Assembly (NCBI GenBank): GCA_048772705.1
Contig: JBLWGC010000043.1
Location: 186,001-250,000, forward strand
Length of the DNA stretch: 64,000 nucleotides
From: Leidyana gryllorum EB-2025a
Lineage: Eukaryota; Protista; Apicomplexa
Direction of reading: 5' to 3'
Part shown: positions 1-19,298 of the stretch, in pieces
Numbering within the stretch: position 1 is the first letter of the stretch
How the letters are laid out: each line of letters opens with the position of its first letter
Made by a program: the position numbers and the translations under genes
The notes under the pieces: generated by a model
The model's input: only the letters and a program-made list of their open reading frames with translations
Told to the model about the DNA's origin: nothing
The model's database searches: none

Positions 1-3000
1 AGACAACTTGGGGAAGGCGTTGTGGCCAATATGTGAATGGCAGACGATCAGGAGTAAGCCAAGATTTAGCGAGGATGCTTTCGTTTGGTAATTTGCCGAA
101 GAACTTGATGTGGTCGAGTTTGGTTGCTCGGCTGGCAGCGACGTAGAGGAAGCGATAATCTTGCTTGGACAGGTCAATCCCATAAGGATGATCGAATGTA
201 CGACCCTGCGCTTTGTGGACAGTTAGGCCCCATGCAAGATCGATAGGGTAGATTCGCTTATTCTTATGTAGCATCGGAGCAACTCGACATAGTTTGTTGC
301 GATTGAGTTTGATCCACAAGTCGTGTTTGAGGGCTTTATGTAAATGGCCAATGCTTCCATTGGTGTAGCCTTTCTTGACGCTTATGTTGGTCGTTATCAT
401 GGTCTTGGCGTTGCGTTTGAGTATGAGTTGCGTCCACTTGTGTATGGTTCGTTTCGAGTTGGTTCTAGTGGATATTGTCTTGATAGTATATGAGGTTGTT
501 ACTTGAATGGGTGTGCCAGGCATATGTTGTACTCTCATCTTGTTATAGCGTGTCCTTTCTTCATTGTGACGGAATAGAACGAAAGGTAAGGTGTTGAGAT
601 CTTTATCAGTGCCTTTGTGAGCATCTACGAACTTGGTGATGGTGGATTTATCGCCGTGTTGAAGAGCTTCGAGGAAGTTAAGGAGATCTGGATCTCGTCC
701 GTGTCGTACGTTATCGATGAGATCGAACCTTGTAAAGAGCTTTGTGAAGGATGGATCTTCATCAAGTGGAGTTGCTCTGACAGGTGGGAGCTGATCGAAG
801 TCACCGAAGGCGATAATAGAGATTCCGCCATATGGTAGGCTCTTGCGAGAATCTGGTTTCGAGTTACCGAGGTTAGTTAACCCTAAGTTTAAGTCGCTTA
901 GAAGCCGTGGCGCCACCATGGATATTTCATCGATAAGGATCAATTCGACGTGTGACGCGTTGTTATGGAGTGTATTCCACGAGCGTGATTGTGTAGTGAG
1001 TACGCTTCCATGGTTCAAGCCAGCAAAATGATGAATGGTTTGGCCCTTGATTAAATAGGCAGCCGTTCCTGTTGGTGCGATGACTTGGCACATGGGCTTG
1101 TCGAGGGTTGTCTTGCCCTCATTGGTATCAATGACTTGGCAGATATGTCGTATCTTGTTGATGAGGAACGATTTTCCAGTGCCTCCTTTACCATGAATGA
1201 GCCATAACAGCTGTGAAGTCCTGCTTGTGTGGATCCACTTGTAGAACTCTATGAGTACTCGAAACTGCGAGGTAGTAACGGTTGAGTTGGGGTCGAAGGA
1301 AAGGGTAGATTGAAGCTGATTTGTTGCGTCATGGTCATCGTCGTCATCATTGTCAGAGTCGTCCGAAGTTGGAATGTCGAATCCAGGATTGTTGAAATCG
1401 TCGTTGACGTGTTCTGGTTCATCATCTTCGTCAGGGGCGTTATCATCGTCGGTATCGTAGCAAATGGAATTTGGTTGCCATCGTGGTTCGTATGGCCGTG
1501 ATTGATGAGCACGTTCAAGGATCTCTTGCTGAGTTTCCGGTGTGTAATCGTTGAAGCACAAGAGTTGATGGACGTCTCTCCAAGGTAAGAAGTAATAGGC
1601 GAGTGATTTGTCGTCGTCAGCTGGGGGTAATGTGGGTGGGTATTGGCCTGCGACAACTACGGGAGCTTGGCGACGTGTGAGATAAAGTTTCTTAGCCGGT
1701 GGAACTGTCATGGGTATGGATCCTGGTTGCCTCTTCGAAACGACATAGTCTCGCGTGAATTCAAATATGCTTAGAGATTCGAGCATGGAAGGACGATTGG
1801 CGTAAATCGTTGGGTATGGTGTAGGTAGTCGAATCTTGGTTGCTTCATCAACAGATTGTGGGCGGTGTATAGCGACCATGAAGTTGAAAGGCTTGAGATA
1901 TACTGTGTTCCATGTGGTCGTTACTGGAAAGCGGCCTTGGCAGGTGAGTGTTGCTTCTTGTAGACTGAGGCGACGTGATAGGTTTAGGTCTTGTGTTTTG
2001 AATAGCGCTTGAGTCATTGTGCGAGTGTTATCGAACGCATCTTCTTTGAGCAATGTGGGTTCGGACTTAGAGACGTACTTGGTGATATATTGGATTGCTT
2101 GGGCGATAGTTGTTACCGGAGAGATGTCCATGTTAGAGTTGGTGTATGGGAAGATGATGGGGTTGAAGTCGTTGATGTTGGCGTCCATAACACGTCTTTG
2201 GGCAAGATAGATAGGGGACGGAAGTGATTGTGCTATCAGGCGATAGTAGGTTTCATGATTTGATATTCCGATGAGGGCGAGCCATTGATCGAATGTAAGT
2301 TGATCGAATTCCATGTGGGTGAACTCCATTGTTTTGTATTGGAGTCTCTTTTGCCAACTGTATACGATTGCTCTCGCAGCTCTTCTATCTTTGCTTTCCG
2401 TATGTGTTGGCAGTAGGAGTTTGCCTATGGGTGTAGGGAGTCGTGGAAAGCGCCATTTGCATGTATTGAGGGGTTTGAGATTCTTCTGACAACGTTGATA
2501 ATGTGTATGGGTTTGAACGCGGCGTATCTCTTCGTCATCTGTCGATGCGAATATGATTTTGTTGAGGAACGTTTCCCATTCGAGAATTCTCCCCGCGCGT
2601 TCGCCCGGCGTGCACAACTCGAGTGGTTTAGGTGTATTTTTACACCATAGAAGGCAATGGGCGTGAGGAGTACCGCGTACTTGATACTCAATCCTCTCGT
2701 AGTGATGGTAGAGGGGGTAGCCGAGCGTAGTGAGATGACGATTAAACTCTTGGAGGAGTAGTGGGAAGAGCTGGCCAGCAAACTCAGCAGTCAGTCCATA
2801 ATCCTTGACGGTTCCGAGAGGAAAATCTTGAAGGCTATAGTAGTATTGAGTTTCTTGTAGGGTTGGATACTTGAAGAACAAATGGGGATCGGATAGTGAG
2901 ATGGTAAGGAAGATTGACGGTACCCCAAATTGCGCAATCATGTTCTGAAGTTGATATCTGGAATTGACGAAATAAGGTGGAAAGGGCGGGATAGTGGCAA

Positions 3001-4468
3001 GAACGGTGCGAATCATCCGATGGTGTGATACATTCTTATTATTGCGAACCATGTCAACGAGTTCTCGTACAATTTCTCGGTCGAGTATCTTGCGAGTGGC
3101 TGTTGTGGACTCTAAGTGAGGTTCTGGGTCTTCAGTGTCAGCTGGTGAAGTGGTTGAGATGTGGCGCTGATGCACTTCTTGATTGATCCAGAATTGCCCT
3201 TTCTTGGATACTGTTTCCTTGAGTTTAGCTGCCAATAGAGTGAAGACGTATAGGTGGTCGCGAATATATTCTAGACGATAACTAGACAGGCGCTGCTTTA
3301 TATATGTTGAGAGGTGAAGATTCTTGGGTATGTGGTGCATCGCGTTATTGGTATTGCGACGCGAAGCGGAAGTTGAGTGCTTGAGCAGTTGTTGATAACT
3401 CGTGTTCCCGTTACATGAGTAGAAGAAGTGTGGAAAGGAGTCGTATTCTATATCGTGAGACGGAGACTTGAAGTAGTATCGTGAAGAAGCGCCAATAGCA
3501 TGATAGTAGATTTTGTCTTCGAACGGATTGGCCTGATAGTTGACTTCCGTAGATCCCATGAGTATAGAGGGAGCTTCAGGCGGGGGTGTAGTCTCGAGTG
3601 TGGAGCGTTCGATCTGTCCTGTATGAGGAGACGTTTCAGTGAGCTCGAGCACTGGGAGGTTGTCGGGAAGATCCTGTTGTATGTGGGAGGTCCCGTAGCG
3701 GGAATCTCGGAGCGATAGTAGGTTGAACGCGTGAATGATGTTTCTACTGTTGAGTTTTCCATAGAAGTGGGGGTGGAAACTGTGTGTGTTGAAGTAAAAC
3801 TTCGCTGGTATGACTTGGGAGCGTTCAGCCAGTGGAATGAGCTCGGAGAAGGCGTATAGATCAGTATACTTGTGGTATACGGCTATAGTTGAGTGAATCC
3901 CTGAGTAATGCTTCAGCCACACGCAAGGTTGTGCAAGGGCGATCGCTCGTTTCTCAATCATGGATAAATTGAGAAGGAAGAGGTTGGGTAGTGGATTGAT
4001 TACGTTGCTTGCACACCGGATGATAGGTTGGGTATAGTCAGAGCACGTGCGACAGATGACGAGGAGCTGGGCAATCAATGGGAGTATTTGGTCGATTGAC
4101 TCTGGTAGTTGATAGGGGAAATGCGGCCGAAGTCTATGTAGTATCATGAACGTGGGTGTGGGATCGAGACGAATTCTGATAGAATCGGGCAGGTTGGTCC
4201 ATTGAACGGGTGTCAAGTCGTCCATAGAACATCGTGAACCGCAATAACTACACGCGAACAACTTGAAAGAGCCGAAATGAAGTGGAGAATCGACTGATTC
4301 AAGGATGCCAGCAGTGACCCATGATTGAAGTAAGGTATTTCTTGCTTGTCGGATTGTGCTCCACGCATGAGCTTGGTCTTGAAGTGTTGGTGGTTGGATG
4401 AGCAATGATTGAACTCTCCAAATGCGTTGTAACTCTTCGAAAGTTTCATCTTGGAGTAGCCGATTCAT
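1..4468 (-). CDS. Helitron RepHel transposase: Cys-pair region, HUH/Y2 Rep endonuclease and PIF1 (SF1B) helicase; 3'-partial, >=1489 aa, intronless
   Basis: Manual translation shows no stop from ATG 4468 to the window edge; the upstream in-frame stop is at 4484-4486. N-terminal CSYC and CRTC. Rep motifs: GVPSIFLT (~2902-2925), EYQVRGTPHAHCLLW (~2645-2690), QTHTH..C..CKWRFP, NMDI and YITKYVSK (~2066-2089). Linker: RRLSLQEA, YANRP..LESLSIFEF, FLPWRD. Helicase: HGKGGTGKS (~1170-1195), APTGTAA, GQTIH, LIDEISM, FGDFDQLPPV, LAWGLTVHKAQG, YVAASR. Confidence 0.95.
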   Translation of the reverse strand, partial: MNRLLQDETFEELQRIWRVQSLLIQPPTLQDQAHAWSTIRQARNTLLQSWVTAGILESVDSPLHFGSFKLFACSYCGSRCSMDDLTPVQWTNLPDSIRIRLDPTPTFMILHRLRPHFPYQLPESIDQILPLIAQLLVICRTCSDYTQPIIRCASNVINPLPNLFLLNLSMIEKRAIALAQPCVWLKHYSGIHSTIAVYHKYTDLYAFSELIPLAERSQVIPAKFYFNTHSFHPHFYGKLNSRNIIHAFNLLSLRDSRYGTSHIQQDLPDNLPVLELTETSPHTGQIERSTLETTPPPEAPSILMGSTEVNYQANPFEDKIYYHAIGASSRYYFKSPSHDIEYDSFPHFFYSCNGNTSYQQLLKHSTSASRRNTNNAMHHIPKNLHLSTYIKQRLSSYRLEYIRDHLYVFTLLAAKLKETVSKKGQFWINQEVHQRHISTTSPADTEDPEPHLESTTATRKILDREIVRELVDMVRNNKNVSHHRMIRTVLATIPPFPPYFVNSRYQLQNMIAQFGVPSIFLTISLSDPHLFFKYPTLQETQYYYSLQDFPLGTVKDYGLTAEFAGQLFPLLLQEFNRHLTTLGYPLYHHYERIEYQVRGTPHAHCLLWCKNTPKPLELCTPGERAGRILEWETFLNKIIFASTDDEEIRRVQTHTHYQRCQKNLKPLNTCKWRFPRLPTPIGKLLLPTHTESKDRRAARAIVYSWQKRLQYKTMEFTHMEFDQLTFDQWLALIGISNHETYYRLIAQSLPSPIYLAQRRVMDANINDFNPIIFPYTNSNMDISPVTTIAQAIQYITKYVSKSEPTLLKEDAFDNTRTMTQALFKTQDLNLSRRLSLQEATLTCQGRFPVTTTWNTVYLKPFNFMVAIHRPQSVDEATKIRLPTPYPTIYANRPSMLESLSIFEFTRDYVVSKRQPGSIPMTVPPAKKLYLTRRQAPVVVAGQYPPTLPPADDDKSLAYYFLPWRDVHQLLCFNDYTPETQQEILERAHQSRPYEPRWQPNSICYDTDDDNAPDEDDEPEHVNDDFNNPGFDIPTSDDSDNDDDDDHDATNQLQSTLSFDPNSTVTTSQFRVLIEFYKWIHTSRTSQLLWLIHGKGGTGKSFLINKIRHICQVIDTNEGKTTLDKPMCQVIAPTGTAAYLIKGQTIHHFAGLNHGSVLTTQSRSWNTLHNNASHVELILIDEISMVAPRLLSDLNLGLTNLGNSKPDSRKSLPYGGISIIAFGDFDQLPPVRATPLDEDPSFTKLFTRFDLIDNVRHGRDPDLLNFLEALQHGDKSTITKFVDAHKGTDKDLNTLPFVLFRHNEERTRYNKMRVQHMPGTPIQVTTSYTIKTISTRTNSKRTIHKWTQLILKRNAKTMITTNISVKKGYTNGSIGHLHKALKHDLWIKLNRNKLCRVAPMLHKNKRIYPIDLAWGLTVHKAQGRTFDHPYGIDLSKQDYRFLYVAASRATKLDHIKFFGKLPNESILAKSWLTPDRLPFTYWPQRLPQVV

Positions 4469-4505
4469 TTGAAGGAACAGTAGTCAAAATTGGGTAAAGA
4501 ATAGG

Positions 4506-5864
4506 ATGAACACGACATTAGACAGAACACTGTGGATTGAAGGACAGCTTTTTTGTCAAATATTGATTGTTGCACTCAAATCATCCACTGTTACACAGAA
4601 GCTTGTTGAGATGGAAAAGAACACATCAAGTTCGGATATTCCGCTGGGTTACCTTGCGTTGGAACGGCTGATGGAGCAACGTCGTCGTCAAACTGGAAGA
4701 GGGAACGCGAGCGACATGTTGATGCAAACAGCCAGTCGCGAGAGTGGAGTGGAGGAGCGCCGAGAGGATAGCGCAGTGGTGACGAGTGAGAAGAAGCAAC
4801 ACATGCAGGAAATGATTAATAAGGTGTTGCAAGACACGATTTACGTTGGTCGCTCACCTGAGTTTGTTGCTCCTGTTGTGATCTCGTGGTTCTCAGACGT
4901 GAGGAAGCACTTATTCTTCGATCAGGGAGATGATGTGAAGTCTAAGTTGCGTGATGGTTGTAGGTATCGTCACTACAACACCTTGGAGCGAGCTCTGGAG
5001 GAGGTGGCGGAAGCAGCTGAAGTGTTCGATGGAGTGAGGGGGCGAGTTAACTTGAGTGCTTGGTACTTAATCTCTTCGTGCCAGTACTTCCAAGGGCCAG
5101 TGATAGTTGGCACTCAAATCGATTTCCAAGCACTGTGCATGAACGTGAATGATGTGTTTAAGCCGCGCACGAGTGTGAGGAAATTCGAGTTGAATGATCT
5201 CGCTGGATTGCGCAATCATTGGGTGTTCGTTCACGTGAGGATCTTGGAGTTCCGGAGAAAGCAGTTAGCCATCAGGATGGGCTTGGATCGACGGCCTGTG
5301 CTCGAACCGATGACGGATCGTGACACGGAAGAGCTAGTTCGGATGGCTGAGGAAGAAGAGAAGAGGGTTGCGAGACGGAGAGCGGAGATGAATGACCGGT
5401 TGCGAGAAATCAATATCAGGGAGTCAGAGCTGGGTCAAGTTGCGAAGCGTGCGAGGACTATAAAGGGGGTGGGGGAAGTTGGTCTTGGACCTTCCGTAGC
5501 AAGTAAGCGAGAGGAAGGACCGAGAATCGAGGCGGCGGATGGGGACTTAAAGGGGGAAATAGAGGAGATGAAGAAAATGATGATGAGTATGGCAAACCGG
5601 TTGGAACGAATGGTGATGAAGGAACCTGATGTCGTTGTTGATCATGAATCATCGATTGAATCAACCCTGATTCAACCGACGTTGCAGCTGGACGATGTTG
5701 CGGGGGGGAACGGCGTGTGGCCTCTTGGGGTTCCTGTGTCAGGTGTGGAAGATCGTCAGATGCCAGAAGGAAAGGTCGGGGCTACTGAGGGAGGTGGAGA
5801 GCAGAGTCCAGTAAGGGAGGATGAAGGAGATACAGATAGAGAGGGCGGAGAAGGTAGCAGTTAG
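4506..5864 (+). CDS. Unknown cargo protein with a coiled-coil segment, divergent from RepHel (start may be ATG 4611)
   Basis: 452-codon intronless ORF with a globular-looking centre, a charged coiled coil (RMAEEEEKRVARRRAEMNDRLREI) and an acidic tail. No recognisable family. Confidence 0.7.
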   Translation: MNTTLDRTLWIEGQLFCQILIVALKSSTVTQKLVEMEKNTSSSDIPLGYLALERLMEQRRRQTGRGNASDMLMQTASRESGVEERREDSAVVTSEKKQHMQEMINKVLQDTIYVGRSPEFVAPVVISWFSDVRKHLFFDQGDDVKSKLRDGCRYRHYNTLERALEEVAEAAEVFDGVRGRVNLSAWYLISSCQYFQGPVIVGTQIDFQALCMNVNDVFKPRTSVRKFELNDLAGLRNHWVFVHVRILEFRRKQLAIRMGLDRRPVLEPMTDRDTEELVRMAEEEEKRVARRRAEMNDRLREINIRESELGQVAKRARTIKGVGEVGLGPSVASKREEGPRIEAADGDLKGEIEEMKKMMMSMANRLERMVMKEPDVVVDHESSIESTLIQPTLQLDDVAGGNGVWPLGVPVSGVEDRQMPEGKVGATEGGGEQSPVREDEGDTDREGGEGSS

Positions 5865-6069
5865 GAGAAGTGTCTTCACGTACCTGATAGGTAGCATGAC
5901 GGACCGATTGCATCAATATTACGAGTGACTGCTTGTGAGTAAGATGTAGGACGACAATGGAATGCGTTAATGCGGGGGAGGAGAGAAGAATTGCAAGTAA
6001 AGTTGAAAGCTTAGTGGAACAGAATGAAAGTAGTATATGGCTTACGAACTACTCGCAGAGTAGTCGCGT

Positions 6070-7260
6070 ACAAGCAGCAAACATCTCGCAAAGAACTGGC
6101 AAACCAGTCGCAAACACGTGTCAAGAAAGTCGCAAACAAGTGGGAAACATGTGGCAGACAAGTTTGAAACAAGTGTCAAGTGAGTGCCAAACATGTGGCA
6201 AACAAGTAGCAAGTGAGTGGCAAACATGTGTCAAACAAGTAGCAAGTGAGTGGCAAAGATGTGGCAAACAAGTAGCAAACATGTGACAAACAAGTGTCAA
6301 GTATGTCGAAAACAAGTGCCAAACATGTTGCAAACAAGTGGCAAACAAATGGCAAACAAGTGGTAAACAAGTCGCAAACAAGTGTCAAGTATGTGGGAAA
6401 CAAGTTTGAAACAAGTAGCAAACATGTTGGAAACAAGTGGCAAACAAGTCGCAAACAAGTGCCAAGTATGTGGCAAACATGTGTGAAAGAAGTATCAAAA
6501 ATGGCACGAACATGTGTCAAACAAGTAGCAAATATGTTGCGAACAAGTGTCAAGTATGTCGGAAACAAGTGACAAACAAGTATCAAACATGTGATAAACA
6601 AGTAGCAAACATGTAGCAAACATGTTGGAAACAAGTGTCAAGTTTGTCGCTCACAAGTGGCAAACATGTGGCAAACAAGTAGCAAATATGTCGCAAACAT
6701 GTTGCAAAGGTGTCGCAACAGTGTCGCAAACATGTGGTAGACAAGTGTCAAACAAGTACCACACATGTCGCAAACATGTGGTAGACAAGTGTGAAAGAGG
6801 TAATAAATATGTGACAAACAAGTGACAAACAAGTATCAAACATGTGACAAACAAGTAGCAAACATGTGACAAACAAGTAGCAAACATGTGACAAACAAGT
6901 AGCAAACATGTTACAAACAAGTGTCAAGTTTGTCGCTCACAACTGCCAAACATGTTGCAAACAGGTGGCAAACAAGTAGCAAACATGTGACAAACAAGTG
7001 ACAAACAAGTAGCAAACATGTGACAAACAAGTAGCAACAAACAAGTAGCAAACATGTTACAAACAAGTAGGAAACATGTTACAAACAAGTGTCAAGTTTG
7101 TCGCTCACAACTGCCAAACATGTTGCAAACAGGTGGCAAACAAGTAGCAAACATGTGACAAACAAGTATCAAACCAGTGGCAAACAAGTAGCAAACATGT
7201 GACAAACAAGTAGGAGACACGTGACAAACAAGTAGCAAACATGTGCCAAACAAGTATTAT
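6070..7260. repeat. Degenerate ~11-bp-period satellite (CAAACAAGTGG / CAAACATGTGA / CAAACAAGTAG variants)
   Basis: Directly visible periodic CAAACA(A/T)GT units over ~1.2 kb, more homogeneous toward 6820-7250. Confidence 0.95.
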
Positions 7261-7439
7261 AGATGTGTAAGACATTAATCATGTCGTACACCGTGTACAA
7301 GGGTGCTACAAGTGTGATAGCATTCTACAGAGATGTGCATCGGGTAGGGAAGAGCCACAGCTTACCGTGTGCGCAGTGTGTGAGGTTTGCGAGGGTTATT
7401 GGTGGCATGTTTAGTATGTATTGGGTTGCTAGAAAAACT

Positions 7440-8537
7440 TTATTGATTGTTTGTTGGGTTCGAAAAAACTTGCTGTCTGTCTCCCTGTTCGTGAGTCGTA
7501 ACCCTTATTCCAGCGCGGGGTGTTGCCCTTGCTTGCGGTGGTGGATTGCTAACAGCCGCAGTGAGAGTGGGAGAGAGAGAAGGGGGAGCAGTAGCCAACG
7601 TAGGGGGGTAAAAAGGGTTCGGACCTCCGTAATACAGCTGAGGAGGTCCGTAAAAGGGGGTAGGAACTCCTGACGGTAGCACAGTGTATGGGGCGAGCTC
7701 GTGGGAGTTGCCGATGCCCATATATGGGTTGTACATGGCTTGTTGATGACGCCATTGGAGGGTTCGCAGTTCCATTTGGAACTGGAGGTGGCGGTCGATG
7801 TTCTGTATGTGGAACATCTCCACCTCCATCGCTTGCTTCAGCTCTTCAATCTTCCTCTTGTGTCGATCCTTGAGCCTCTTAGCCTGCTGAACTGCGGGTT
7901 CACCCCAAATGGGCACGCCATGTGTGGCAATGGGTGCGTCAAGGGCTTGAGAGCGAGCCCGAGCGGAGCTCCCTTGAAGGGGGATGGGTTCCATGTATGC
8001 TTGGTGACCCGGTGGGTGGGAGAGAGGTGTTCGAAGAGGAACAGTGTGATTGTGGATGATATCCTCAACCAACCGTTCGTCTTTGAGTAGGGATGAGGGG
8101 GGAGAAGCTGCCGCAGGGGGAAGAAGGGGGGGGAGTTGGGAGGCGCCGGTGGTAGCCGTCGAGACGGTGGGTGGTCTCTGTCCAAGCCCGAGCGGCTGGG
8201 AGAGCGGAGGGCTTGCTGTCGAGGCGGCTTCGGTGAGGTAGGACCGCGTCGGAGCCCTCACAACCATTGTGGTTGTCGCTTCCACAGGGGCTTCGGGCTC
8301 GGAGGGCTTTGGAGGGGGACTTACCTGTGTCAGAGAAGGGGGCGAACTTTCAGCGGGCTGGGTAGAGGGGGTAGCAGGGCTGTTGGGGGGCGACTCGGGA
8401 GGCGTGGCCTCGATGGTCTCTTCTTCGAGCTCAGTGTTGCTCGAGGCTTCCATGTTGAGCGTCGTTGGTACGCTGGGAAGGGCCAGAGCCTCACCTTGAG
8501 CTTCAGTGGGTGCGTCACAAAGGGCTTTCTGTGCCAT
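7440..8537 (-). CDS. Unknown Pro/Ser/Thr-rich cargo protein with a short central coiled coil (~365 aa)
   Basis: Part of ORF 7440..8684. The likely start is MAQKALC at 8537, because the upstream part overlaps non-coding 43-bp repeats. Coiled coil QQAKRLKDRHKRKIEELKQAMEVEM; YxP-rich C-terminus. Confidence 0.6.
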   Translation of the reverse strand: MAQKALCDAPTEAQGEALALPSVPTTLNMEASSNTELEEETIEATPPESPPNSPATPSTQPAESSPPSLTQVSPPPKPSEPEAPVEATTTMVVRAPTRSYLTEAASTASPPLSQPLGLGQRPPTVSTATTGASQLPPLLPPAAASPPSSLLKDERLVEDIIHNHTVPLRTPLSHPPGHQAYMEPIPLQGSSARARSQALDAPIATHGVPIWGEPAVQQAKRLKDRHKRKIEELKQAMEVEMFHIQNIDRHLQFQMELRTLQWRHQQAMYNPYMGIGNSHELAPYTVLPSGVPTPFYGPPQLYYGGPNPFYPPTLATAPPSLSPTLTAAVSNPPPQARATPRAGIRVTTHEQGDRQQVFSNPTNNQ

Positions 8538-8839
8538 GGTCAATCTTAAGCGATACAAAAAACTGGTGGCAACTTTGTATTTACAAAAAAATTTGTAACG
8601 AGATAAGGGTGACGACATTGGTAGAATCGCGAAAATTTGCGTAAAAATTTCGATGAGACTTGAACGGGTTAAGGATGACGACAAGAAAAAACACGCAAAA
8701 TATTTGCACTGGCAGCGGCAACTGTATGAGGCATTGAAGGTACATAAGGTAAGAGACTCACCTATTACATGTCTTGTTCTCGTACGTGATCACTTCGTGT
8801 ATCTTATGCTACAACGCTGCCGTCTTACCATCTTTTGTT

Positions 8840-9384
8840 TTAGATGATGTTGCCCATCTCAACTTGGAACCCTTTCCCGCAAATCTGACACTTCATGTAT
8901 CCCCGATGTACATGAGGAGGGGTAGGGGGAGCTAGGGGAGGGGTAGGGGCTGCCAGCCTTGGCAATGGCTTCAGGTCCACCGTCGAGGCCAGTGAGTCTC
9001 TGCGAGTGCTCAATAACTCTGTTTGCTCATCTTGAACAACCGTTGAGAGACACCCAATGACCTCAGTAGACGAGACCGAAGCTGAGGGAGACTGAGAATC
9101 ACTCAGTGGCATGCTAACTGGGGGGCCACTGGATGCTGGTTGGGGGAGGGAGCGAATGGGGGAGGGGTTAGCTGGCTGGGGAAAAAACCGAACAACCGGG
9201 GGTTCAGGCTCCATTGGCTGGAGCTCTACTCGCAATTGGGGTCGCGGGGCATCCCAGTTCCTCGCAAAGTGCCGAAGCTCTTCCTCGGCTATGTGAGATG
9301 TGTGGGGATGAGGTGTGGGAACTTACTTGGTGTGGGAACGTGCCAGACCAGTCTGAGTGGCACGAGGTCACGTCTTGGGAACAT
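8840..9384 (-). CDS. Two-exon unknown cargo protein (168 aa, Pro-rich, C-terminal CxxC knuckle)
   Basis: ATG 9384, exon 9384-9327, 38-nt intron GTAAGT...CATAG (9326-9289), exon 9288-8840. The spliced frame is continuous: MFPRRDLVPLRLVWHVPTP-TEEELRHFARNWDAPRPQLRVEL...YMKCQICGKG. Confidence 0.6.
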
Positions 9385-9885
9385 CTGGGGGGGAAGAAAG
9401 CGAGCGCGAGCGAGAAGAGGGCTTTTTGGATCTGAGAACAAAAATAACAGTCCAAGTCCCACGTCTCGCACACCAAATCTTGGGAAAAGTGGCTCGTTTG
9501 GGCTGCTATCTGTTGCTTGCGAGCCGCACGAGAGCTAAATTAAGGAGTCTGACGACCCTTACATCTCGATGGGAGGCTAGTTTGCTGTAGCGAACGAGCC
9601 AATTGAAGTTTGGGAAGTCTCATTTTTGCAAAAATCAGGCCTTCTCGTGTCTCAGAGAGCTCGAGAGAGTCGCCTATCTCCTATTCTAGCGGCGAGATTT
9701 CGCCTAAAATCTGGCTGCCAACTAATCAGGCCACTACTATTCCTAAGGTAAGCGAGAGAGCTAGTCTAGAGCTCCTAATCAAATTCCTATTTCACTAAAA
9801 GTCGTTTCTGGTACCCCCTAAGAACCCCCAAAAAACCTACGGTAATGGTCGGGCTCACCCTTGCGGGTTTCGCCGACCTGCACAA

Positions 9886-10265
9886 CCAGCTGATTGATCA
9901 GGCGAAGGTTCTGTATGATTTCGGTCCTTGAGTAGTTGGCACTGCTACCAGTGTAACCCTGGTCGCGGGTCACGTCTTCGGTAAGTCGGGGTTCGGGAAG
10001 CTTGGCGGGTTCAGTGGGTTCGGTCGTTTCCGTCGGGGGTTCGTCTACTGTCGTTATGGATCTCTTAGTACGTTTCGGGGGCATGTTGTTAGAACAAGCA
10101 GTCACGTAAAAAGGGTCTAACGTTCCTTCCTCCAGTTTCAGTTTCCGTGTGTGTTTGCGTTCCCCCCGTGTCTCCGTGCCGGTGCCGGCCGGCACTCCGA
10201 AGCCGGAGACGCGGTCTTACCTGTGCCGGGGGTCAGTCTAGGAGTGGGTTTGATTCCCTGCTACA
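9886..10265 (-). mobile_element. Captured 380-bp 5' fragment of a TGTA-starting foreign element (LTR-retroelement-like) with ORF start MPPKRTKR; second copy at 12619-12998
   Basis: It replaces the sequence left of AACTCTGC, which reads GACG^AACTCTGC in uninterrupted modules. The minus strand begins TGTAGC, then a GC-rich hairpin region, then ATG at 10085. Truncated at the terminus. Confidence 0.5.
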
Positions 10266-10299
10266 AACTCTGCTTTTTTGAAAATTTGGTAAGGGGGGG

Positions 10300-10470
10300 T
10301 TAAGGATGACGACACGAAAAAATCCGATGAATTAGTAACGGGTTAAGGATGACGACATGAAAAATTCCGATGAATTTGTAACGAGATAAGGATGACGACA
10401 TCAAAAAACACCGATAAACTTGTAACGAGATAAGGGTGACGACATCAAAAAAATGTGATAAATTTCGTTT
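10300..10470. repeat. Four 43-44-bp direct repeats (TAAGG(A/G)TGACGACA...A-run...GTAACG) per module
   Basis: Units start at 10300, 10343, 10386 and 10430. The same block is at ~11668, 13033, 14401, 15769 and 17219. Diverged copies lie at ~8590-8700. Confidence 0.9.
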
Positions 10471-13400
10471 AGAGACACCCAATAAGACGAGAAAGACGGT
10501 AGGGGAGACTGAGAATGACTCAATGAGATGTTAGCTGGGGCGTCACTGGATGCTGGTTGGGGCAGGTAGCGAATGGGGGTCAGTTGGCTGGGATTAAAAC
10601 TGCACAACGGGGAGGTGAGGCTCTGGTCGCAAAGTGCCGAAGCTCTTCCTCGGCTATGTGAGATGTGTGGGGATGAGGTGTGGGAACTTACTTGGTGTGG
10701 GAACGTGCCAGACCAGTCTGAGTGGCAGGAGGTCACGTCTTGGGAACATCTGGGGGGGAAGAAAGCGAGCGCGAGCGAGAAGAGGGCTTTTTGGATCTGA
10801 GAACAAAAATAACAGTCCAAGTCCCACGTCTCGCACACCAAATCTTGGGAAAAGTGGCTCGTTTGGGCTGCTATCTGTTGCTTGCGAGCCGCACGAGAGC
10901 TAAATTAAGGAGTCTGACGACCCTTACATCTCGATGGGAGGCTAGTTTGCTGTAGCGAACGAGCCAATTGAAGTTTGGGAAGTCTCATTTTTGCAAAAAT
11001 CAGGCCTTCTCGTGTCTCAGAGAGCTCGAGAGAGTCGCCTATCTCCTATTCTAGCGGTGAGATTTCGCCTAAAATCTGGCTGCTAACTAATCAGGCCACT
11101 ACTATTCCTAAGGTAAGCGAGAGAGCTAGTCTAGAGCTCCTAATCAAATTCCTATTTCACTAAAAGTCGTTTCTGGTACCCCCTAAGAACCCCCAAAAAA
11201 CCTACGGTAATGGTCGGGCTCACCCTTGCGGGTTTCGCCGACCTGCACAACGACCCTTACATCTCGATGGGAGGCTAGTTTGCTGTAGCGAACGAGCCAA
11301 TTGAAGTTTGGGAAGTCTCATTTTTGCAAAAATCAGGCCTTCTCGTGTCTCAGAGAGCTCGAGACAGTCGCCTATCTCCTATTCTAGCGGTGAGATTTCG
11401 CCTAAAATCTGGCTGCTAACTAATCAGGCCACTACTATTCCTAAGGTAAGCGAGAGAGCTAGTCTAGAGCTCCTAATCAAATTCCTATTTCACTAAAAGT
11501 CGTTTCTGGTACCCCCAAAAAACCTACGGTAATGGTCGGGCTCACCCTTGCGGGTTTCGCCGACCTGCACAAAGGTGCTGCAAAGAGATGTGTAACACAA
11601 GTATCATCTGGTACAAGTTGCACACTGGTGACGAACTCTGCTTTTTTGAAAATTTGGTAAGGGGGGGTTAAGGATGACGACAGGAAAAAACCCGATGAAT
11701 TAGTAACGGGTTAAGGATGACGACATGAAAAATTCCGATGAATTTGTAACGAGATAAGGATGACGACATCAAAAAACACCGATAAACTTGTAACGAGATA
11801 AGGGTGACGACATCAAAAAAATGTGATAAATTTCGTTTAGAGACACCCAATAAGACGAGAAAGACGGTAGGGGAGACTGAGAATGACTCAATGAGATGTT
11901 AGCTGGGGCGTCACTGGATGCTGGTTGGGGCAGGTAGCGAATGGGGGTCAGTTGGCTGGGATTAAAACTGCACAACGGGGAGGTGAGGCTCTGGTCGCAA
12001 AGTGCCGAAGCTCTTCCTCGGCTATGTGAGATGTGTGGGGATGAGGTGTGGGAACTTACTTGGTGTGGGAACGTGCCAGACCAGTCTGAGTGGCAGGAGG
12101 TCACGTCTTGGGAACATCTGGGGGGGAAGAAAGCGAGCGCGAGCGAGAAGAGGGCTTTTTGGATCTGAGAACAAAAATAACAGTCCAAGTCCCACGTCTC
12201 GCACACCAAATCTTGGGAAAAGTGGCTCGTTTGGGCTGCTATCTGTTGCTTGCGAGCCGCACGAGAGCTAAATTAAGGAGTCTGACGACCCTTACATCTC
12301 GATGGGAGGCTAGTTTGCTGTAGCGAACGAGCCAATTGAAGTTTGGGAAGTCTCATTTTTGCAAAAATCAGGCCTTCTCGTGTCTCAGAGAGCTCGAGAG
12401 AGTCGCCTATCTCCTATTCTAGCGGTGAGATTTCGCCTAAAATCTGGCTGCTAACTAATCAGGCCACTACTATTCCTAAGGTAAGCGAGAGAGCTAGTCT
12501 AGAGCTCCTAATCAAATTCCTATTTCACTAAAAGTCGTTTCTGGTACCCCCTAAGAACCCCCAAAAAACCTACGGTAATGGTCGGGCCCACCCTTGCGGG
12601 TTTCGCCGACCTGCACAACCAGCTGATTGATCAGGCGAAGGTTCTGTATGATTTCGGTCCTTGAGTAGTTGGCACTGCTACCAGTGTAACCCTGGTCGCG
12701 GGTCACGTCTTCGGTAAGTCGGGGTTCGGGAAGCTTGGCGGGTTCAGTGGGTTCGGTCGTTTCCGTCGGGGGTTCGTCTACTGTCGTTATGGATCTCTTA
12801 GTACGTTTCGGGGGCATGTTGTTAGAACAAGCAGTCACGTAAAAAGGGTCTAACGTTCCTTCCTCCAGTTTCAGTTTCCGTGTGTGTTTGCGTTCCCCCC
12901 GTGTCTCCGTGCCGGTGCCGGCCGGCACTCCGGAGCCGGAGACGCGGTCTTACCTGTGCCGGGGGTCAGTCTAGGAGTGGGTTTGATTCCCTGCTACAAA
13001 CTCTGCTTTTTTGAAAATTTGGTAAGGGGGGGTTAAGGATGACGACACGAAAAAATCCGATGAATTAGTAACGGGTTAAGGATGACGACATGAAAAATTC
13101 CGATGAATTTGTAACGAGATAAGGATGACGACATCAAAAAACACCGATAAACTTGTAACGAGATAAGGGTGACGACATCAAAAAAATGTGATAAATTTCG
13201 TTTAGAGACACCCAATAAGACGAGAAAGACGGTAGGGGAGACTGAGAATGACTCAATGAGATGTTAGCTGGGGCGTCACTGGATGCTGGTTGGGGCAGGT
13301 AGCGAATGGGGGTCAGTTGGCTGGGATTAAAACTGCACAACGGGGAGGTGAGGCTCTGGTCGCAAAGTGCCGAAGCTCTTCCTCGGCTATGTGAGATGTG

Positions 13401-16400
13401 TGGGGATGAGGTGTGGGAACTTACTTGGTGTGGGAACGTGCCAGACCAGTCTGAGTGGCAGGAGGTCACGTCTTGGGAACATCTGGGGGGGAAGAAAGCG
13501 AGCGCGAGCGAGAAGAGGGCTTTTTGGATCTGAGAACAAAAATAACAGTCCAAGTCCCACGTCTCGCACACCAAATCTTGGGAAAAGTGGCTCGTTTGGG
13601 CTGCTATCTGTTGCTTGCGAGCCGCACGAGAGCTAAATTAAGGAGTCTGACGACCCTTACATCTCGATGGGAGGCTAGTTTGCTGTAGCGAACGAGCCAA
13701 TTGAAGTTTGGGAAGTCTCATTTTTGCAAAAATCAGGCCTTCTCGTGTCTCAGAGAGCTCGAGAGAGTCGCCTATCTCCTATTCTAGCGGTGAGATTTCG
13801 CCTAAAATCTGGCTGCTAACTAATCAGGTCACTACTATTCCTAAGGTAAGCGAGAGAGCTAGTCTAGAGCTCCTAATCAAATTCCTATTTCACTAAAAGT
13901 CGTTTCTGGTACCCCCTAAGAACCCCCAAAAAACCTACGGTAATGGTCGGGCTCACCCTTGCGGGTTTCGCCGACCTGCACAACGACCCTTACATCTCGA
14001 TGGGAGGCTAGTTTGCTGTAGCGAACGAGCCAATTGAAGTTTGGGAAGTCTCATTTTTGCAAAAATCAGGCCTTCTCGTGTCTCAGAGAGCTCGAGACAG
14101 TCGCCTATCTCCTATTCTAGCGGTGAGATTTCGCCTAAAATCTGGCTGCTAACTAATCAGGCCACTACTATTCCTAAGGTAAGCGAGAGAGCTAGTCTAG
14201 AGCTCCTAATCAAATTCCTATTTCACTAAAAGTCGTTTCTGGTACCCCCAAAAAACCTACGGTAATGGTCGGGCTCACCCTTGCGGGTTTCGCCGACCTG
14301 CACAAAGGTGCTGCAAAGAGATGTGTAACACAAGTATCATCTGGTACAAGTTGCACACTGGTGACGAACTCTGCTTTTTTGAAAATTTGGTAAGGGGGGG
14401 TTAAGGATGACGACAGGAAAAAACCCGATGAATTAGTAACGGGTTAAGGATGACGACATGAAAAATTCCGATGAATTTGTAACGAGATAAGGATGACGAC
14501 ATCAAAAAACACCGATAAACTTGTAACGAGATAAGGGTGACGACATCAAAAAAATGTGATAAATTTCGTTTAGAGACACCCAATAAGACGAGAAAGACGG
14601 TAGGGGAGACTGAGAATGACTCAATGAGATGTTAGCTGGGGCGTCACTGGATGCTGGTTGGGGCAGGTAGCGAATGGGGGTCAGTTGGCTGGGATTAAAA
14701 CTGCACAACGGGGAGGTGAGGCTCTGGTCGCAAAGTGCCGAAGCTCTTCCTCGGCTATGTGAGATGTGTGGGGATGAGGTGTGGGAACTTACTTGGTGTG
14801 GGAACGTGCCAGACCAGTCTGAGTGGCAGGAGGTCACGTCTTGGGAACATCTGGGGGGGAAGAAAGCGAGCGCGAGCGAGAAGAGGGCTTTTTGGATCTG
14901 AGAACAAAAATAACAGTCCAAGTCCCACGTCTCGCACACCAAATCTTGGGAAAAGTGGCTCGTTTGGGCTGCTATCTGTTGCTTGCGAGCCGCACGAGAG
15001 CTAAATTAAGGAGTCTGACGACCCTTACATCTCGATGGGAGGCTAGTTTGCTGTAGCGAACGAGCCAATTGAAGTTTGGGAAGTCTCATTTTTGCAAAAA
15101 TCAGGCCTTCTCGTGTCTCAGAGAGCTCGAGAGAGTCGCCTATCTCCTATTCTAGCGGTGAGATTTCGCCTAAAATCTGGCTGCTAACTAATCAGGCCAC
15201 TACTATTCCTAAGGTAAGCGAGAGAGCTAGTCTAGAGCTCCTAATCAAATTCCTATTTCACTAAAAGTCGTTTCTGGTACCCCCTAAGAACCCCCAAAAA
15301 ACCTACGGTAATGGTCGGGCTCACCCTTGCGGGTTTCGCCGACCTGCACAACGACCCTTACATCTCGATGGGAGGCTAGTTTGCTGTAGCGAACGAGCCA
15401 ATTGAAGTTTGGGAAGTCTCATTTTTGCAAAAATCAGGCCTTCTCGTGTCTCAGAGAGCTCGAGACAGTCGCCTATCTCCTATTCTAGCGGTGAGATTTC
15501 GCCTAAAATCTGGCTGCTAACTAATCAGGCCACTACTATTCCTAAGGTAAGCGAGAGAGCTAGTCTAGAGCTCCTAATCAAATTCCTATTTCACTAAAAG
15601 TCGTTTCTGGTACCCCCAAAAAACCTACGGTAATGGTCGGGCTCACCCTTGCGGGTTTCGCCGACCTGCACAAAGGTGCTGCAAAGAGATGTGTAACACA
15701 AGTATCATCTGGTACAAGTTGCACACTGGTGACGAACTCTGCTTTTTTGAAAATTTGGTAAGGGGGGGTTAAGGATGACGACAGGAAAAAACCCGATGAA
15801 TTAGTAACGGGTTAAGGATGACGACATGAAAAATTCCGATGAATTTGTAACGAGATAAGGATGACGACATCAAAAAACACCGATAAACTTGTAACGAGAT
15901 AAGGGTGACGACATCAAAAAAATGTGATAAATTTCGTTTAGAGACACCCAATAAGACGAGAAAGACGGTAGGGGAGACTGAGAATGACTCAATGGTTAGC
16001 TGGGGCGTCACTGGATGCTGGTTGGGGCAGGTAGCGAATGGGGGTCAGTTGGCTGGGATTAAAACTGCACAACGGGGAGGTGAGGCTCTGGTCGCAAAGT
16101 GCCGAAGCTCTTCCTCGGCTATGTGAGATGTGTGGGGATGAGGTGTGGGAACTTACTTGGTGTGGGAACGTGCCAGACCAGTCTGAGTGGCACGAGGTCA
16201 CGTCTTGGGAACATCTGGGGGGGAAGAAAGCGAGCGCGAGCGAGAAGAGGGCTTTTTGGATCTGAGAACAAAAATAACAGTCCAAGTCCCACGTCTCGCA
16301 CACCAAATCTTGGGAAAAGTGGCTCGTTTGGGCTGCTATCTGTTGCTTGCGAGCCGCACGAGAGCTAAATTAAGGAGTCTGACGACCCTTACATCTCGAT

Positions 16401-17680
16401 GGGAGGCTAGTTTGCTGTAGCGAACGAGCCAATTGAAGTTTGGGAAGTCTCATTTTTGCAAAAATCAGGCCTTCTCGTGTCTCAGAGAGCTCGAGAGAGT
16501 CGCCTATCTCCTATTCTAGCGGTGAGATTTCGCCTAAAATCTGGCTGCTAACTAATCAGGCCACTACTATTCCTAAGGTAAGCGAGAGAGCTAGTCTAGA
16601 GCTCCTAATCAAATTCCTATTTCACTAAAAGTCGTTTCTGGTACCCCCTAAGAACCCCCAAAAAACCTACGGTAATGGTCGGGCTCACCCTTGCGGGTTT
16701 CGCCGACCTGCACAACAAGCAAGTGTAAAGCATGTGGCAAACAAGTTTCAAACGAGTGTCAAACAAGTGTGGAACATGTGGGAAAAAAGTGTTAAACATG
16801 TGGCGAACAAGTCTCAACGGAGTTTCAAACAAGTGTTAAACATGTGGCGAAGAAGTGGCAAACACGTGTCAAACGAGTATCAAACAAGTGTGAAATATGT
16901 GGCAGAAAAGTGTTTAACATGTGGCGAACAAGTCTCAACTGAGTGTCAACGAAGTATGAAAGATGTGGCAAAGAAGTGGCAAGCAAGTGTAAAGCAGGTG
17001 GCAAACAAGTTTCAAAGAAGTATCAAACAAGTAGGAAGCAAGTAGGAAATAAGTGTGAAACAGGTAGCAAACAAGTGTCAAACATGTCGCAAACAAGTCT
17101 CGAACATGTTGCAAAGGGGTATTGAAGGTGCTGCAAAGAGATGTGTAACACAAGTATCATCTGGTACAAGTTGCACACTCGTGACGAACTCTGCTTTTTT
17201 GAAAAATTTGGTAAGGGGTTAAGGATGACGACATGAAAAATTCCGATGAATTAGTAACGGGTTAAGGATGACGACATGAAAAATTCCGATGAATTTGTAA
17301 CGAGATAAGGATGACTACATCAAAAAACACCGATAAACTTGTAACGGGATAAGGGTGACGACATCAAAAAAATGTAATAAATTTCGCTTAGAGACACCCA
17401 ATAACCTCAGTAGACGAGAAAGACGGTAGGGGAGAATGAGAATGACTCAATGAGATGTTAGCTGGGGCGTCACTGGATGCTGGTTGGGGCAGGTAGCGAA
17501 TGGGGGTCAGTTGGCTGGGATAAAAAGTGCACAACGGGGAGGTGAGGCTCTGGTCGCAAAGTGGCGAAGCTCCTTGGGGGCTTTCTGGGATGTGTGGGGA
17601 TGAGTTGCGGGAACTTACTTGGTGTGGGAACGTGCCAGACCAGTCTGAGTGGCACGAGGTCACGTCTTGGGAACATCTGC
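10470..17680 (-). pseudogene. Six deleted or diverged copies of the 8840-9384 cargo gene inside the array modules
   Basis: Exon 1 (MFPRRDL..) and the 38-nt intron are retained. Exon 2 is diverged, internally deleted and joined to the 43-bp repeats. Confidence 0.7.
16716..17125. repeat. Diverged copy of the 11-bp CAAACAAGT satellite inside the 1461-bp module
   Basis: Same periodic motif as 6070-7260. Confidence 0.9.
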
Positions 17681-18176
17681 GGGGAAGAAAGCGAGCGCGA
17701 GCGAGAAGAGGGCTTTTTGGATCTGAGAACAAAAATAACAGTACAAGTCCCACGTCTCGCACACCAAATCTTGGGAAAGGTGGCTCGTTTGGGCTGCTAT
17801 CTGTTGCTTGCGAGCCGCACGAGAGCTAAATTAAGGAGTCTGACGACCCTTACATCTCGATGGGAGGCTAGTTTGCTGTAGCGAACGAGCCAATTGAAGT
17901 TTGGGAAGTCTCATTTTTGCAAAAATCAGGCCTTCTCGTGTCTCAGAGAGCTCGAGAGAGTCGCCTATCTCCTATTCTAGCGGTGAGATTTCGCCTAAAA
18001 TCTGGCTGCTAACTAATCAGGCCACTACTATTCCTAAGGTAAGCGAGAGAGCTAGTCTAGAGCTCCTAATCAAATTCCTATTTCACTAAAAGTCGTTTCT
18101 GGTACCCCCTAAGAACCCCCAAAAAACCTACGGTAATGGTCGGGCTCACCCTTGCGGGTTTCGCCGACCTGCACAA

Positions 18177-18267
18177 CACGTGTGTTCATGTAACTAAAAA
18201 GGTCACAGTCTGCTGTAGCTAAAAGGTCACCTCTGCCCAGTGATCTGGCCGCAGTGTAATCCTTACA
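18177..18267 (-). mobile_element. 91-bp TGTAAG-starting foreign fragment between two termini
   Basis: Unique sequence that starts TGTAAGG on the minus strand immediately after the hairpin base. It has an internal direct repeat CTAAAA(A)GGTCAC. Confidence 0.4.
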
Positions 18268-18305
18268 GTCGGGCTCACCCTTGCGGGTTTCGCCGACCTG
18301 CACAA

Positions 18306-18883
18306 TCAGTATCGGTTCTTCCATACTCCGGTCGCCTCGGACTGGAACGGTCGAAGTGTCGGCGGGTTTTTTGACCGTTCGCTTTCCGTTTGCCTTTGTC
18401 AATCGTCGGCCAGTGCGCGTGGTGCCATCGATCTGGGCACTGCTACCAATGTAATCTGTTGGGCCGGCGGCGTCCGAGCCAACTGCGAGTCGGTGGGCCC
18501 GTGGCCTCAAGGTACGTGGAGAAACCATGGTAAGTTTCGTTGGGTTCGGTTGCGTTCGTGCACACGTGTGTGTATATTAAAAATGCCGGTGTCTCCGGGC
18601 ACGGAGACACCGGTTGCATTCTACCTATCTGTGCTTCTGCTGGCTCGACCTTGGTCGATCGGTGACTGTCTTCTGCTACAACGTGTGTCCGTGTCTCCGC
18701 CCGGCCGGCCGGCCGGTCTCCGAGACACAAACAAGCAGGGCGGATTGACCGAGGTCAAGCGCCGTCAGAAATCCGCCTTTGGCGTAGGTGGTGTCCACCG
18801 CAGAGGACTCCGTCTGCTGGATCGAGGAGTGTGGGCCGATCCAGCAGAGCAAGGGGGGTTCGGGGAGGTGTCATTCCGTTACA
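18306..18883 (-). mobile_element. 578-bp TGTAAC-starting foreign 5' fragment with a highly structured leader and ORF start MVSPRTLRPR
   Basis: Starts TGTAACGG inside the hairpin base. Perfect hairpin at 18586-18613 and other stems. ATG at 18528. Shares Y[TI]GSSA and GTGTCTCCG/CCGGCCGG features with the 9886-10265 fragment. Confidence 0.5.
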
Positions 18884-19047
18884 GGGCTCACCCTTGCGGG
18901 TTTCGCCGACCTGCACAACCGTACTTGCGCACGCTACAGCAACCGCAACGTGTACAGAATTGAAAGCTAAACAGTCGCAAACACGCAAACACAGTACAAT
19001 GCAGCGATAAACAACCACATAAACCACATAATCCAAAAGCAAACAGC

Positions 19048-19298
19048 AGTCACAACAGCCATCGAAGCCGACCGAAACGCCGAACCAAAGGTTACAGGCA
19101 AACTAGTCACAACAGCCATCGAAGCCGACCGAAACGCCGAACCAAAGGTTACAGGCAAACTAGTCACAACAGCCATCGAAGCCGACCGAAACGCCGAACC
19201 AAAGGTTACAGGCAACTAGTCCAAAAGCAAACAACAGTTACAACAGCCATCGAAGCCGACCTAAATGCCGAACCAAAGGTTACAGGCAAACTAGTCAC
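19048..19298. repeat. 57-bp tandem repeat (3 near-perfect copies plus 1 diverged copy)
   Basis: AGTCACAACAGCCATCGAAGCCGACCGAAACGCCGAACCAAAGGTTACAGGCAAACT at 19048, 19105, 19162 and ~19236. Confidence 0.95.

Follow-up and report, generated by a model that had tools for sequence, protein, structure and literature searches.

Positions 9847-18918 of a 64,000-nucleotide stretch of the Leidyana gryllorum EB-2025a genome (assembly GCA_048772705.1, contig JBLWGC010000043.1, positions 186,001 to 250,000; hereafter the window) hold an array of 12 hairpin termini, upstream of an intact gene for a Helitron transposase, RepHel. By their ends and coding content, the termini appear to belong to a young, Helitron2-like family which is apparently active. 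The explanation that we favour, with a probability of about 0.5, is that family members inserted repeatedly into one another, that units with several ends were then moved from an outer 5' origin to the first CTAGT, and that unequal crossing-over added further copies. The stack is a larger example of a published phenomenon, which it extends to six or seven separate ends, longer modules and intervening pieces of long terminal repeat (LTR) retrotransposons. What is new is the host group and a hotspot of insertion in the hairpin stem.

Structure of the array and its termini

The original prediction, made from the sequence of the window, described 12 hairpin ends of one orientation sharing the same right-hand base, and a recount reproduced them with their spacings. 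All lie on the + strand, ending at 9885, 11250, 11572, 12618, 13983, 14305, 15351, 15673, 16715, 18176, 18305 and 18918, at intervals of 1365, 322, 1046, 1365, 322, 1046, 322, 1042, 1461, 129 and 613 bp; the array in the window contains no minus-strand copy. The copies were also said to carry one and the same motif. Nine are perfect and one has a single substitution, but LTR ends have cut copies 11 and 12 down to 37 and 34 nt, respectively; copy 12 lacks the outer stem. The last A of CTGCACAA is not assignable to the element, as it equals the A of the G^A target. Mapping of the motif across the 15.5-Mb genome, proposed as a check, gave 62 hairpin ends and 40 of the opposite CTAGT ends; since the reversed motif pattern used as control had no match, the hairpin motif is not a product of chance. 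Twenty-two of the 62 hairpin ends fell outside the sequence reading, and contigs C78, C201, C208 and C230 are known by coordinates only.

The second terminus, expected to the left of the window, was found there. The CTAGT 3' end of the autonomous element lies at L001:8477 (C43:184577), 1,424 bp left of the window, and reads ACTAG on the + strand; the element has a total length of 11,308 bp, and positions 1-9884 (minus strand) are its part in the window. As had been noted, no opposite terminus occurs between the modules. An inverted stack of four CTAGT 3' termini (18918-19295, + strand; ends at about 19107, 19164, 19220 and 19295) directly follows copy 12 and had been overlooked. A 57-bp tandem repeat in this interval consists of these stacked termini and arose from insertions 57 and 76 nt from the ends of relatives.

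Insertion follows a strict rule. Every distinct CTAG-end flank finishes in G (14/14) and every distinct hairpin-end flank starts with A on the + strand, mostly with AC (32/32). Where both ends of an insertion could be paired, the two flanks rejoin as an intact G^A target with no target-site duplication. On the RepHel strand the site is T^C, mostly GT^C, and the register is 5' TGTGCA-hairpin ... CTAGT 3' in T^C or, with the shared T shifted, 5' TT ... CTAG 3' before TC. The alternative that the motif is the end of another element class, a terminal inverted repeat or LTR end with target duplications, was ruled out by the strict G^A rule together with the lack of any duplication.

The array has seven distinct right-hand junctions. 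The 5' terminus of the autonomous element (9847-9884, minus strand) consists of TGTGCA and a hairpin with a GCAA loop, and contains the 7-bp GGTCGGC. Beside it, module X (9885-10262, + strand) is the 3' end of a gypsy-type retrotransposon with its LTR (9952-10262), 98-99% identical to an element on C78. A 987-bp 5' fragment of a non-autonomous copy (N1; 10263-11249, minus strand), cut by LTR X, ends in the second hairpin end. Module B (11250-11571, minus strand) is a family 5' fragment with an internal 11-bp deletion, entered at a G^A site 333 nt from its end, and module D (11572-12617, minus strand) is another, entered about 1051 nt from its end. Tandem duplications of a 2733-bp unit X+N1+B+D and a 1368-bp unit B+D occupy 12618-16714 and supply five of the 12 hairpin ends. 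Module E (16715-18175, minus strand), one more 5' fragment of the family, was entered within the satellite, some 1462 nt from its end. Module F (18176-18304, + strand), the probable outer limit of the composite, joins a 92-bp LTR 3' fragment, identical to that at L008, to the last 37 nt of a family copy. Further out are G1 (18305-18680, + strand), a single-copy gypsy 3' end with its LTR from 18450, and a 203-bp 3' fragment of another LTR, with identical copies on C43, C96 and C170, joined to the 34 terminal nt of a family copy whose hairpin is broken (18681-18917, + strand). The retrotransposon pieces were described and searched one by one. Repeated insertion into relatives, as originally proposed, was borne out to the extent that relatives are frequent targets, but three landing sites are LTR retrotransposons, pieces of which start three of the modules.

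The duplicated modules are 99.5-100% identical, with 0-2 substitutions or a single 4-bp indel in each. One allele is common to the first-type module and two D copies and absent from the third D copy; because crossing-over would give such a pattern, unequal crossing-over is taken as the source of the duplications. Misassembly of the five duplicated ends is a lesser but appreciable possibility. The notion of an ordered, polar insertion record therefore survives in part: inner ends are younger, but only seven of the 12 ends are separate events, and twelve independent landings were rejected on account of the five duplicates.

The left halves of all targets are missing at this locus. Since nesting in place would leave each left half beside the CTAG end, later collapse or mobilisation is needed, as the original prediction had anticipated. 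To the left of the CTAG end the flanking DNA is a single-copy gypsy element (Y), which does not continue into X; by elimination, its likeliest continuation is G1. If G1 is the right half of gypsy Y, the interval from L001:8477 to window position 18304 is one unit with six distinct hairpin ends and the 12th end outside it. Seven distinct junctions are thus present as predicted, but probably only six belong to one unit, the 12th hairpin end probably lying beyond what was moved. A simple insertion of the autonomous element, in place, into one retrotransposon was at first appealing, as a reading frame continues 14 codons into X; it was ruled out on the grounds that X is a member of the C78 family and that C78 lacks any DNA or protein match to the left flank.

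Self-insertion across the genome

Forty-five distinct insertion events were tallied in the sampled loci. About 20 hit family copies and a comparable number hit LTR retrotransposons; a few fall in clusters of transfer RNA (tRNA) genes and about three in unassigned DNA. Family members insert into copies of their own family, mostly in the same orientation. Measured against the family's share of the genome (about 1-2%, estimated from end counts) this is a 20- to 40-fold enrichment, but against repeat-rich islands alone it is maybe only two- to three-fold. LTR elements are targeted about as often, so that part of the self-insertion is a transposon-island effect; with this confounding, the strong and specific self-targeting first proposed could not be upheld. 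LTR elements have in turn inserted in family copies more than 10 times in the sampled DNA, and the two kinds of element insert into each other to give Russian-doll nests in transposon islands. Three separate LTR insertions lie at the hairpin foot, 34, 37 and 46 nt from the hairpin end (window 18268 and 18884; L008:1816).

Two signs exceed the island effect. Sixteen self-insertions are in the same orientation as their target and four in the opposite one at near-equal target density (p ~0.01), and four of the 20 are at two symmetric sites in the hairpin stem (p ~6e-5 if independent), both p-values being optimistic as the events may be related by descent. The hairpin-stem insertions (L003:5053-5071, L018:1240-1258, L017:1149 and L017:4660) give 9-nt end duplications. 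As the stem offers GGT^CGG on both strands, the transposase might home actively to its own terminal hairpin, by structure or through bound Rep, so that the family finds shelter inside its own copies within a compact genome, and its ordered stacks are moved as units; we consider this rather unlikely.

Complete nested intermediates were found on C180 (859 and 2380 nt from the end), inside RepHel at C43:77385-80592 and, inverted, on C201. Contig C43 carries one forward CTAG end versus 16 forward hairpin ends. Further stacks, each with one CTAG end, are located at C208:1109-9121 (six hairpin ends) and C230:20685-26661 (three hairpin ends). With respect to the tRNA genes, very dense mixed-isotype clusters were observed at L012:1-9999, L013, L004:165-1343 and L005:353-1546; the one on C66 packs 38 genes into 10 kb. 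These clusters receive insertions of family copies, one apparently within a tRNA gene.

Proposed mobilisation of multi-ended units

In the mechanism that we favour, the hairpin end would be the 5' origin on the RepHel strand. Rep would nick any intact origin in a nest, displace the strand past the inner origins and halt at the first CTAGT, and a unit carrying multiple 5' ends but a single 3' end would thus move to a new site without read-through. Six such steps would yield the unit from L001:8477 to window position 18304, to which unequal crossing-over between the repeated ends would later have added five copies. An outer-5'-origin model of this kind has been published for the FoHeli elements of Fusarium (PMC5148889, PMC13342296). 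We favour this route over recombination and over read-through, although it was probably mixed with recombination between nested repeats.

Movement of multi-ended units is suggested by shared structures on different contigs: a 678-bp module with one rare hairpin allele is present on both C208 and C230, and the 333-site junction of module B is present on both C43 and C208, in each case by coordinates. With respect to polarity, analogy would place the origin at the hairpin end, as the shifted register 5' TT ... CTAG 3' into ^T is that of canonical Helitrons and of proto-Helentron. A small hairpin precedes CTAGT, and the CTAG end is conserved in a relative with 60% identity. All internal ends are intact; in maize Helitrons internal 5' ends are intact and internal 3' ends are 99% mutated (PMC3288121). 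Hairpin ends also exceed CTAG ends genome-wide, by 62:40.

Several observations weigh against this explanation. The excess of hairpin ends shrinks to 56:39 (p 0.10) once tandem duplicates are removed, and the polarity argument is one of analogy. With a hairpin only 6-7 nt away, the sharp end resembles a terminator on the other strand as well, and CTAG ends likewise form a stack (18918-19295). The window stack has no copy elsewhere in the genome, and the shared junctions could be hotspot recurrences. Family copies are mosaic, which shows that recombination is active. The joining of gypsy Y to G1 gave no significant signal when tested by protein similarity to relatives.

It is conceivable, though clearly less probable than the outer-origin route, that the stack formed where it stands. 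Homologous recombination between direct repeats of a same-orientation nest would delete the left halves, much as solo LTRs form, leaving one CTAG end, many hairpin ends and precise junctions; Rep would have moved no composite, and self-targeting would be survival in transposon islands. The recombinant allele pattern of the duplicated modules, the mosaic family copies, the stacks at both ends and an LTR pair left of the element with non-matching target duplications all speak for such a history, as do the LTR elements, which are targeted about as often as family copies and enter those copies repeatedly. For Fusarium, too, recombination between FoHeli1 copies has been proposed to account for deletions. 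A chimeric CTAG end in the autonomous copy, considered as a further sign of recombination, was dropped because the copies are too mosaic. Formation in place would however require six successive insertions at one locus, and does not alone account for one module with its rare allele on two contigs, for the orientation bias or for the four hairpin-stem insertions.

The original prediction had the hairpin end as a leaky terminator; the + strand would then move from the CTAG end as origin, a polarity that is IS91-like relative to the transposase gene. This we find doubtful; it is the less likely polarity, and stacked origins need no read-through. A hairpin near a sharp end resembles the terminator of Helraiser, for which read-through has been shown, HLE2-reverse elements with a stem-loop upstream of RepHel exist, and AC begins both the element start and the target on the + strand; all junctions of the array are equally compatible with the reversed polarity. 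However, up to five intact terminators would have to be bypassed per event, and a working terminator here would by default yield an excess of CTAG ends, the opposite of what was counted. Bypassed 3' ends are mutated in maize, whereas here every internal end is intact, and capture of host flanks by read-through was not seen in the sampled loci.

An origin of the array chiefly by misassembly or as a rolling-circle concatemer is very improbable despite the near-identity of the duplicated modules, since its seven unique junctions, all at G^A, correspond to real sites within family members or LTRs and comparable stacks exist on other contigs; a concatemer was ruled out, as head-to-tail junctions are absent from the window and the loci.

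The autonomous element, its class and its host

As predicted, RepHel is intact. Its open reading frame (ORF; 1-4468, minus strand) is intronless, extends 428 bp beyond the left window edge and encodes 1631 aa with an HUH motif (HAH), two catalytic tyrosines in YITKY (YxxKY), a Walker A motif and a Pif1 helicase, all in the single ORF. Pfam matches were to Helitron_like_N (E 1e-9) and PIF1 (E 3e-17). No apurinic/apyrimidinic (AP) endonuclease domain was found in the Pfam scan, and the C-terminal tail of about 140 aa was matchless in the part scanned. A second intact RepHel copy is present on C201.

The prediction of a non-canonical Helitron terminus tied to RepHel copies was supported. The element has the features of the Helitron superfamily: RepHel in one ORF, precise ends, a dinucleotide target and no target-site duplication. 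Of the HLE1 features (5' TC, 3' hairpin-CTRR, insertion at A^T) only the CTAG end fits, the 5' end being (T)TG and the target (G/T)^TC or T^C. As in HLE2/Helitron2, insertion is at T^C and hairpins are present at both ends. The 5' hairpin is of modest energy (-9.1 kcal/mol, z ~-1.9 to -2.4 for the 39-40-mer), and the weak 3' hairpin before CTAGT (-4.7 kcal/mol) is no better than shuffles. The asymmetric terminal inverted repeat, GGTCGGC, lies at distances of 6 nt from the 5' terminus and 34 nt from the 3' terminus; this geometry is right for HLE2, but the length is only 7 bp where about 11-17 bp is expected. Motif 2 of Rep has Y-E-R where F/Y-x-R is expected, and G-T-P where HLE2 has G-S-P or G-L-P. 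The C-terminal AP endonuclease that defines strict Helentrons is lacking. DUF6570, a marker of HLE2/Helitron2 although not an obligatory one, went undetected in the family by Pfam at E 5, and comparison with a DUF6570 protein was likewise negative; it is present in the next distant relative. Judged by ends, target and motifs, the family would fit closer to Helitron2/HLE2 and proto-Helentron than to canonical Helitrons.

The nearest published counterparts are FoHeli1 and FoHeli2 of Fusarium oxysporum (Helitron2/HLE2), in which multiple 5' termini, up to five in one FoHeli1 copy, were ascribed to self-insertion (PMC5148889, PMC13342296). These elements likewise have multiple 5' termini and a 5' hairpin holding an inverted repeat, the partner of which is located roughly 35-50 nt before the 3' end; they too lack an endonuclease domain and do not duplicate their target. 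In contrast, the inverted repeat is 7 bp here and 12 bp there, the ends here are TGTGCA and CTAGT at target T^C, and the host is a gregarine. The modules here reach 1.5-1.8 kb and are interleaved with LTR fragments, whereas those of Fusarium are typically <200 bp. Proto-Helentron (Phytophthora) and HLE2-reverse elements share the shifted 5' TT / 3' CTAG, the 5' stem-loop and a Helentron-type Rep signature without endonuclease (PMC4067079, PMC11417382), but insert at A^T rather than (G/T)^TC and carry different cargo, and the likeness is one of ends and motifs. In maize, nested insertion near or inside relatives similarly gives multi-terminus Helitrons with intact internal 5' ends, although those are canonical HLE1 elements (TC ... 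CTRR, A^T) with mutated internal 3' ends (PMC3288121). In Helraiser (HLE1), experiments showed that the left end is essential and that the right-end hairpin, on the CTAG side, is a bypassable terminator (PMC4778049, PMC5876387). It shares with the present family the HUH Y2 Rep with Pif1 helicase, the CTAG^T end and a likely circular intermediate, but its end roles were tested whereas ours are assigned by analogy, and no self preference was reported for it (PMC4778049, PMC5876387). Helraiser was too distant for a phmmer match against PDB chains.

The host is a gregarine; a flippase encoded in the window has its best named relatives in Blabericola migrator and Gregarina sp. No class II transposon, Helitron or other, was found when 64 apicomplexan genomes were surveyed in 2022 (PMC9141347), and we found no report in the literature of Helitrons in apicomplexans, nor any after that survey. 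The apparently active Helitron family described here, which has a gregarine host and a relative in a second dataset, contradicts this generalisation for Apicomplexa. The relative, in run ERR10900114, has a RepHel 60% identical to that of the window; it shares the 3' end of the family, which is again followed by C. A copy of the host flippase with 77% identity is found under an adjacent run accession, ERR10900107. Since RepHel is intact, the copies are young and nearly identical and either end forms stacks, the family is a test bed for determining at which end a Helitron2-type element has its origin.

The family comprises the 11,308-bp autonomous element and a common non-autonomous derivative of about 3.2 kb, with which the former shares an internal 11-bp-based satellite (6070-7255). 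In addition to RepHel the autonomous element carries two cargo ORFs. The first (4506-5864, + strand, 452 aa) is divergent: it begins on the other strand from RepHel, 37 bp away from the start codon of that gene. It had no match in Pfam or Atlas, but the related element has kept a version of it (33% over 150 aa, E 1e-26). The second (7440-8684, minus strand) is proline-rich, encodes 414 aa from a TTG and had no Pfam match. An older autonomous copy at L002:1859-4931, 15 kb left of the window, is inverted and broken, with 92-95% identity; it is oriented like the inverted CTAG stack and may be the outermost shell of the nest. A 640-bp LTR with internal tRNA-like fragments has at least 14 copies at 96-98% identity, among them L001:3186-3830, L001:5993-6634 and L002:7487-8125; in one pair of these LTRs the target duplications do not match, a sign of recombination. 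The element of the 60%-identical relative also ends beside tRNA-like sequence.

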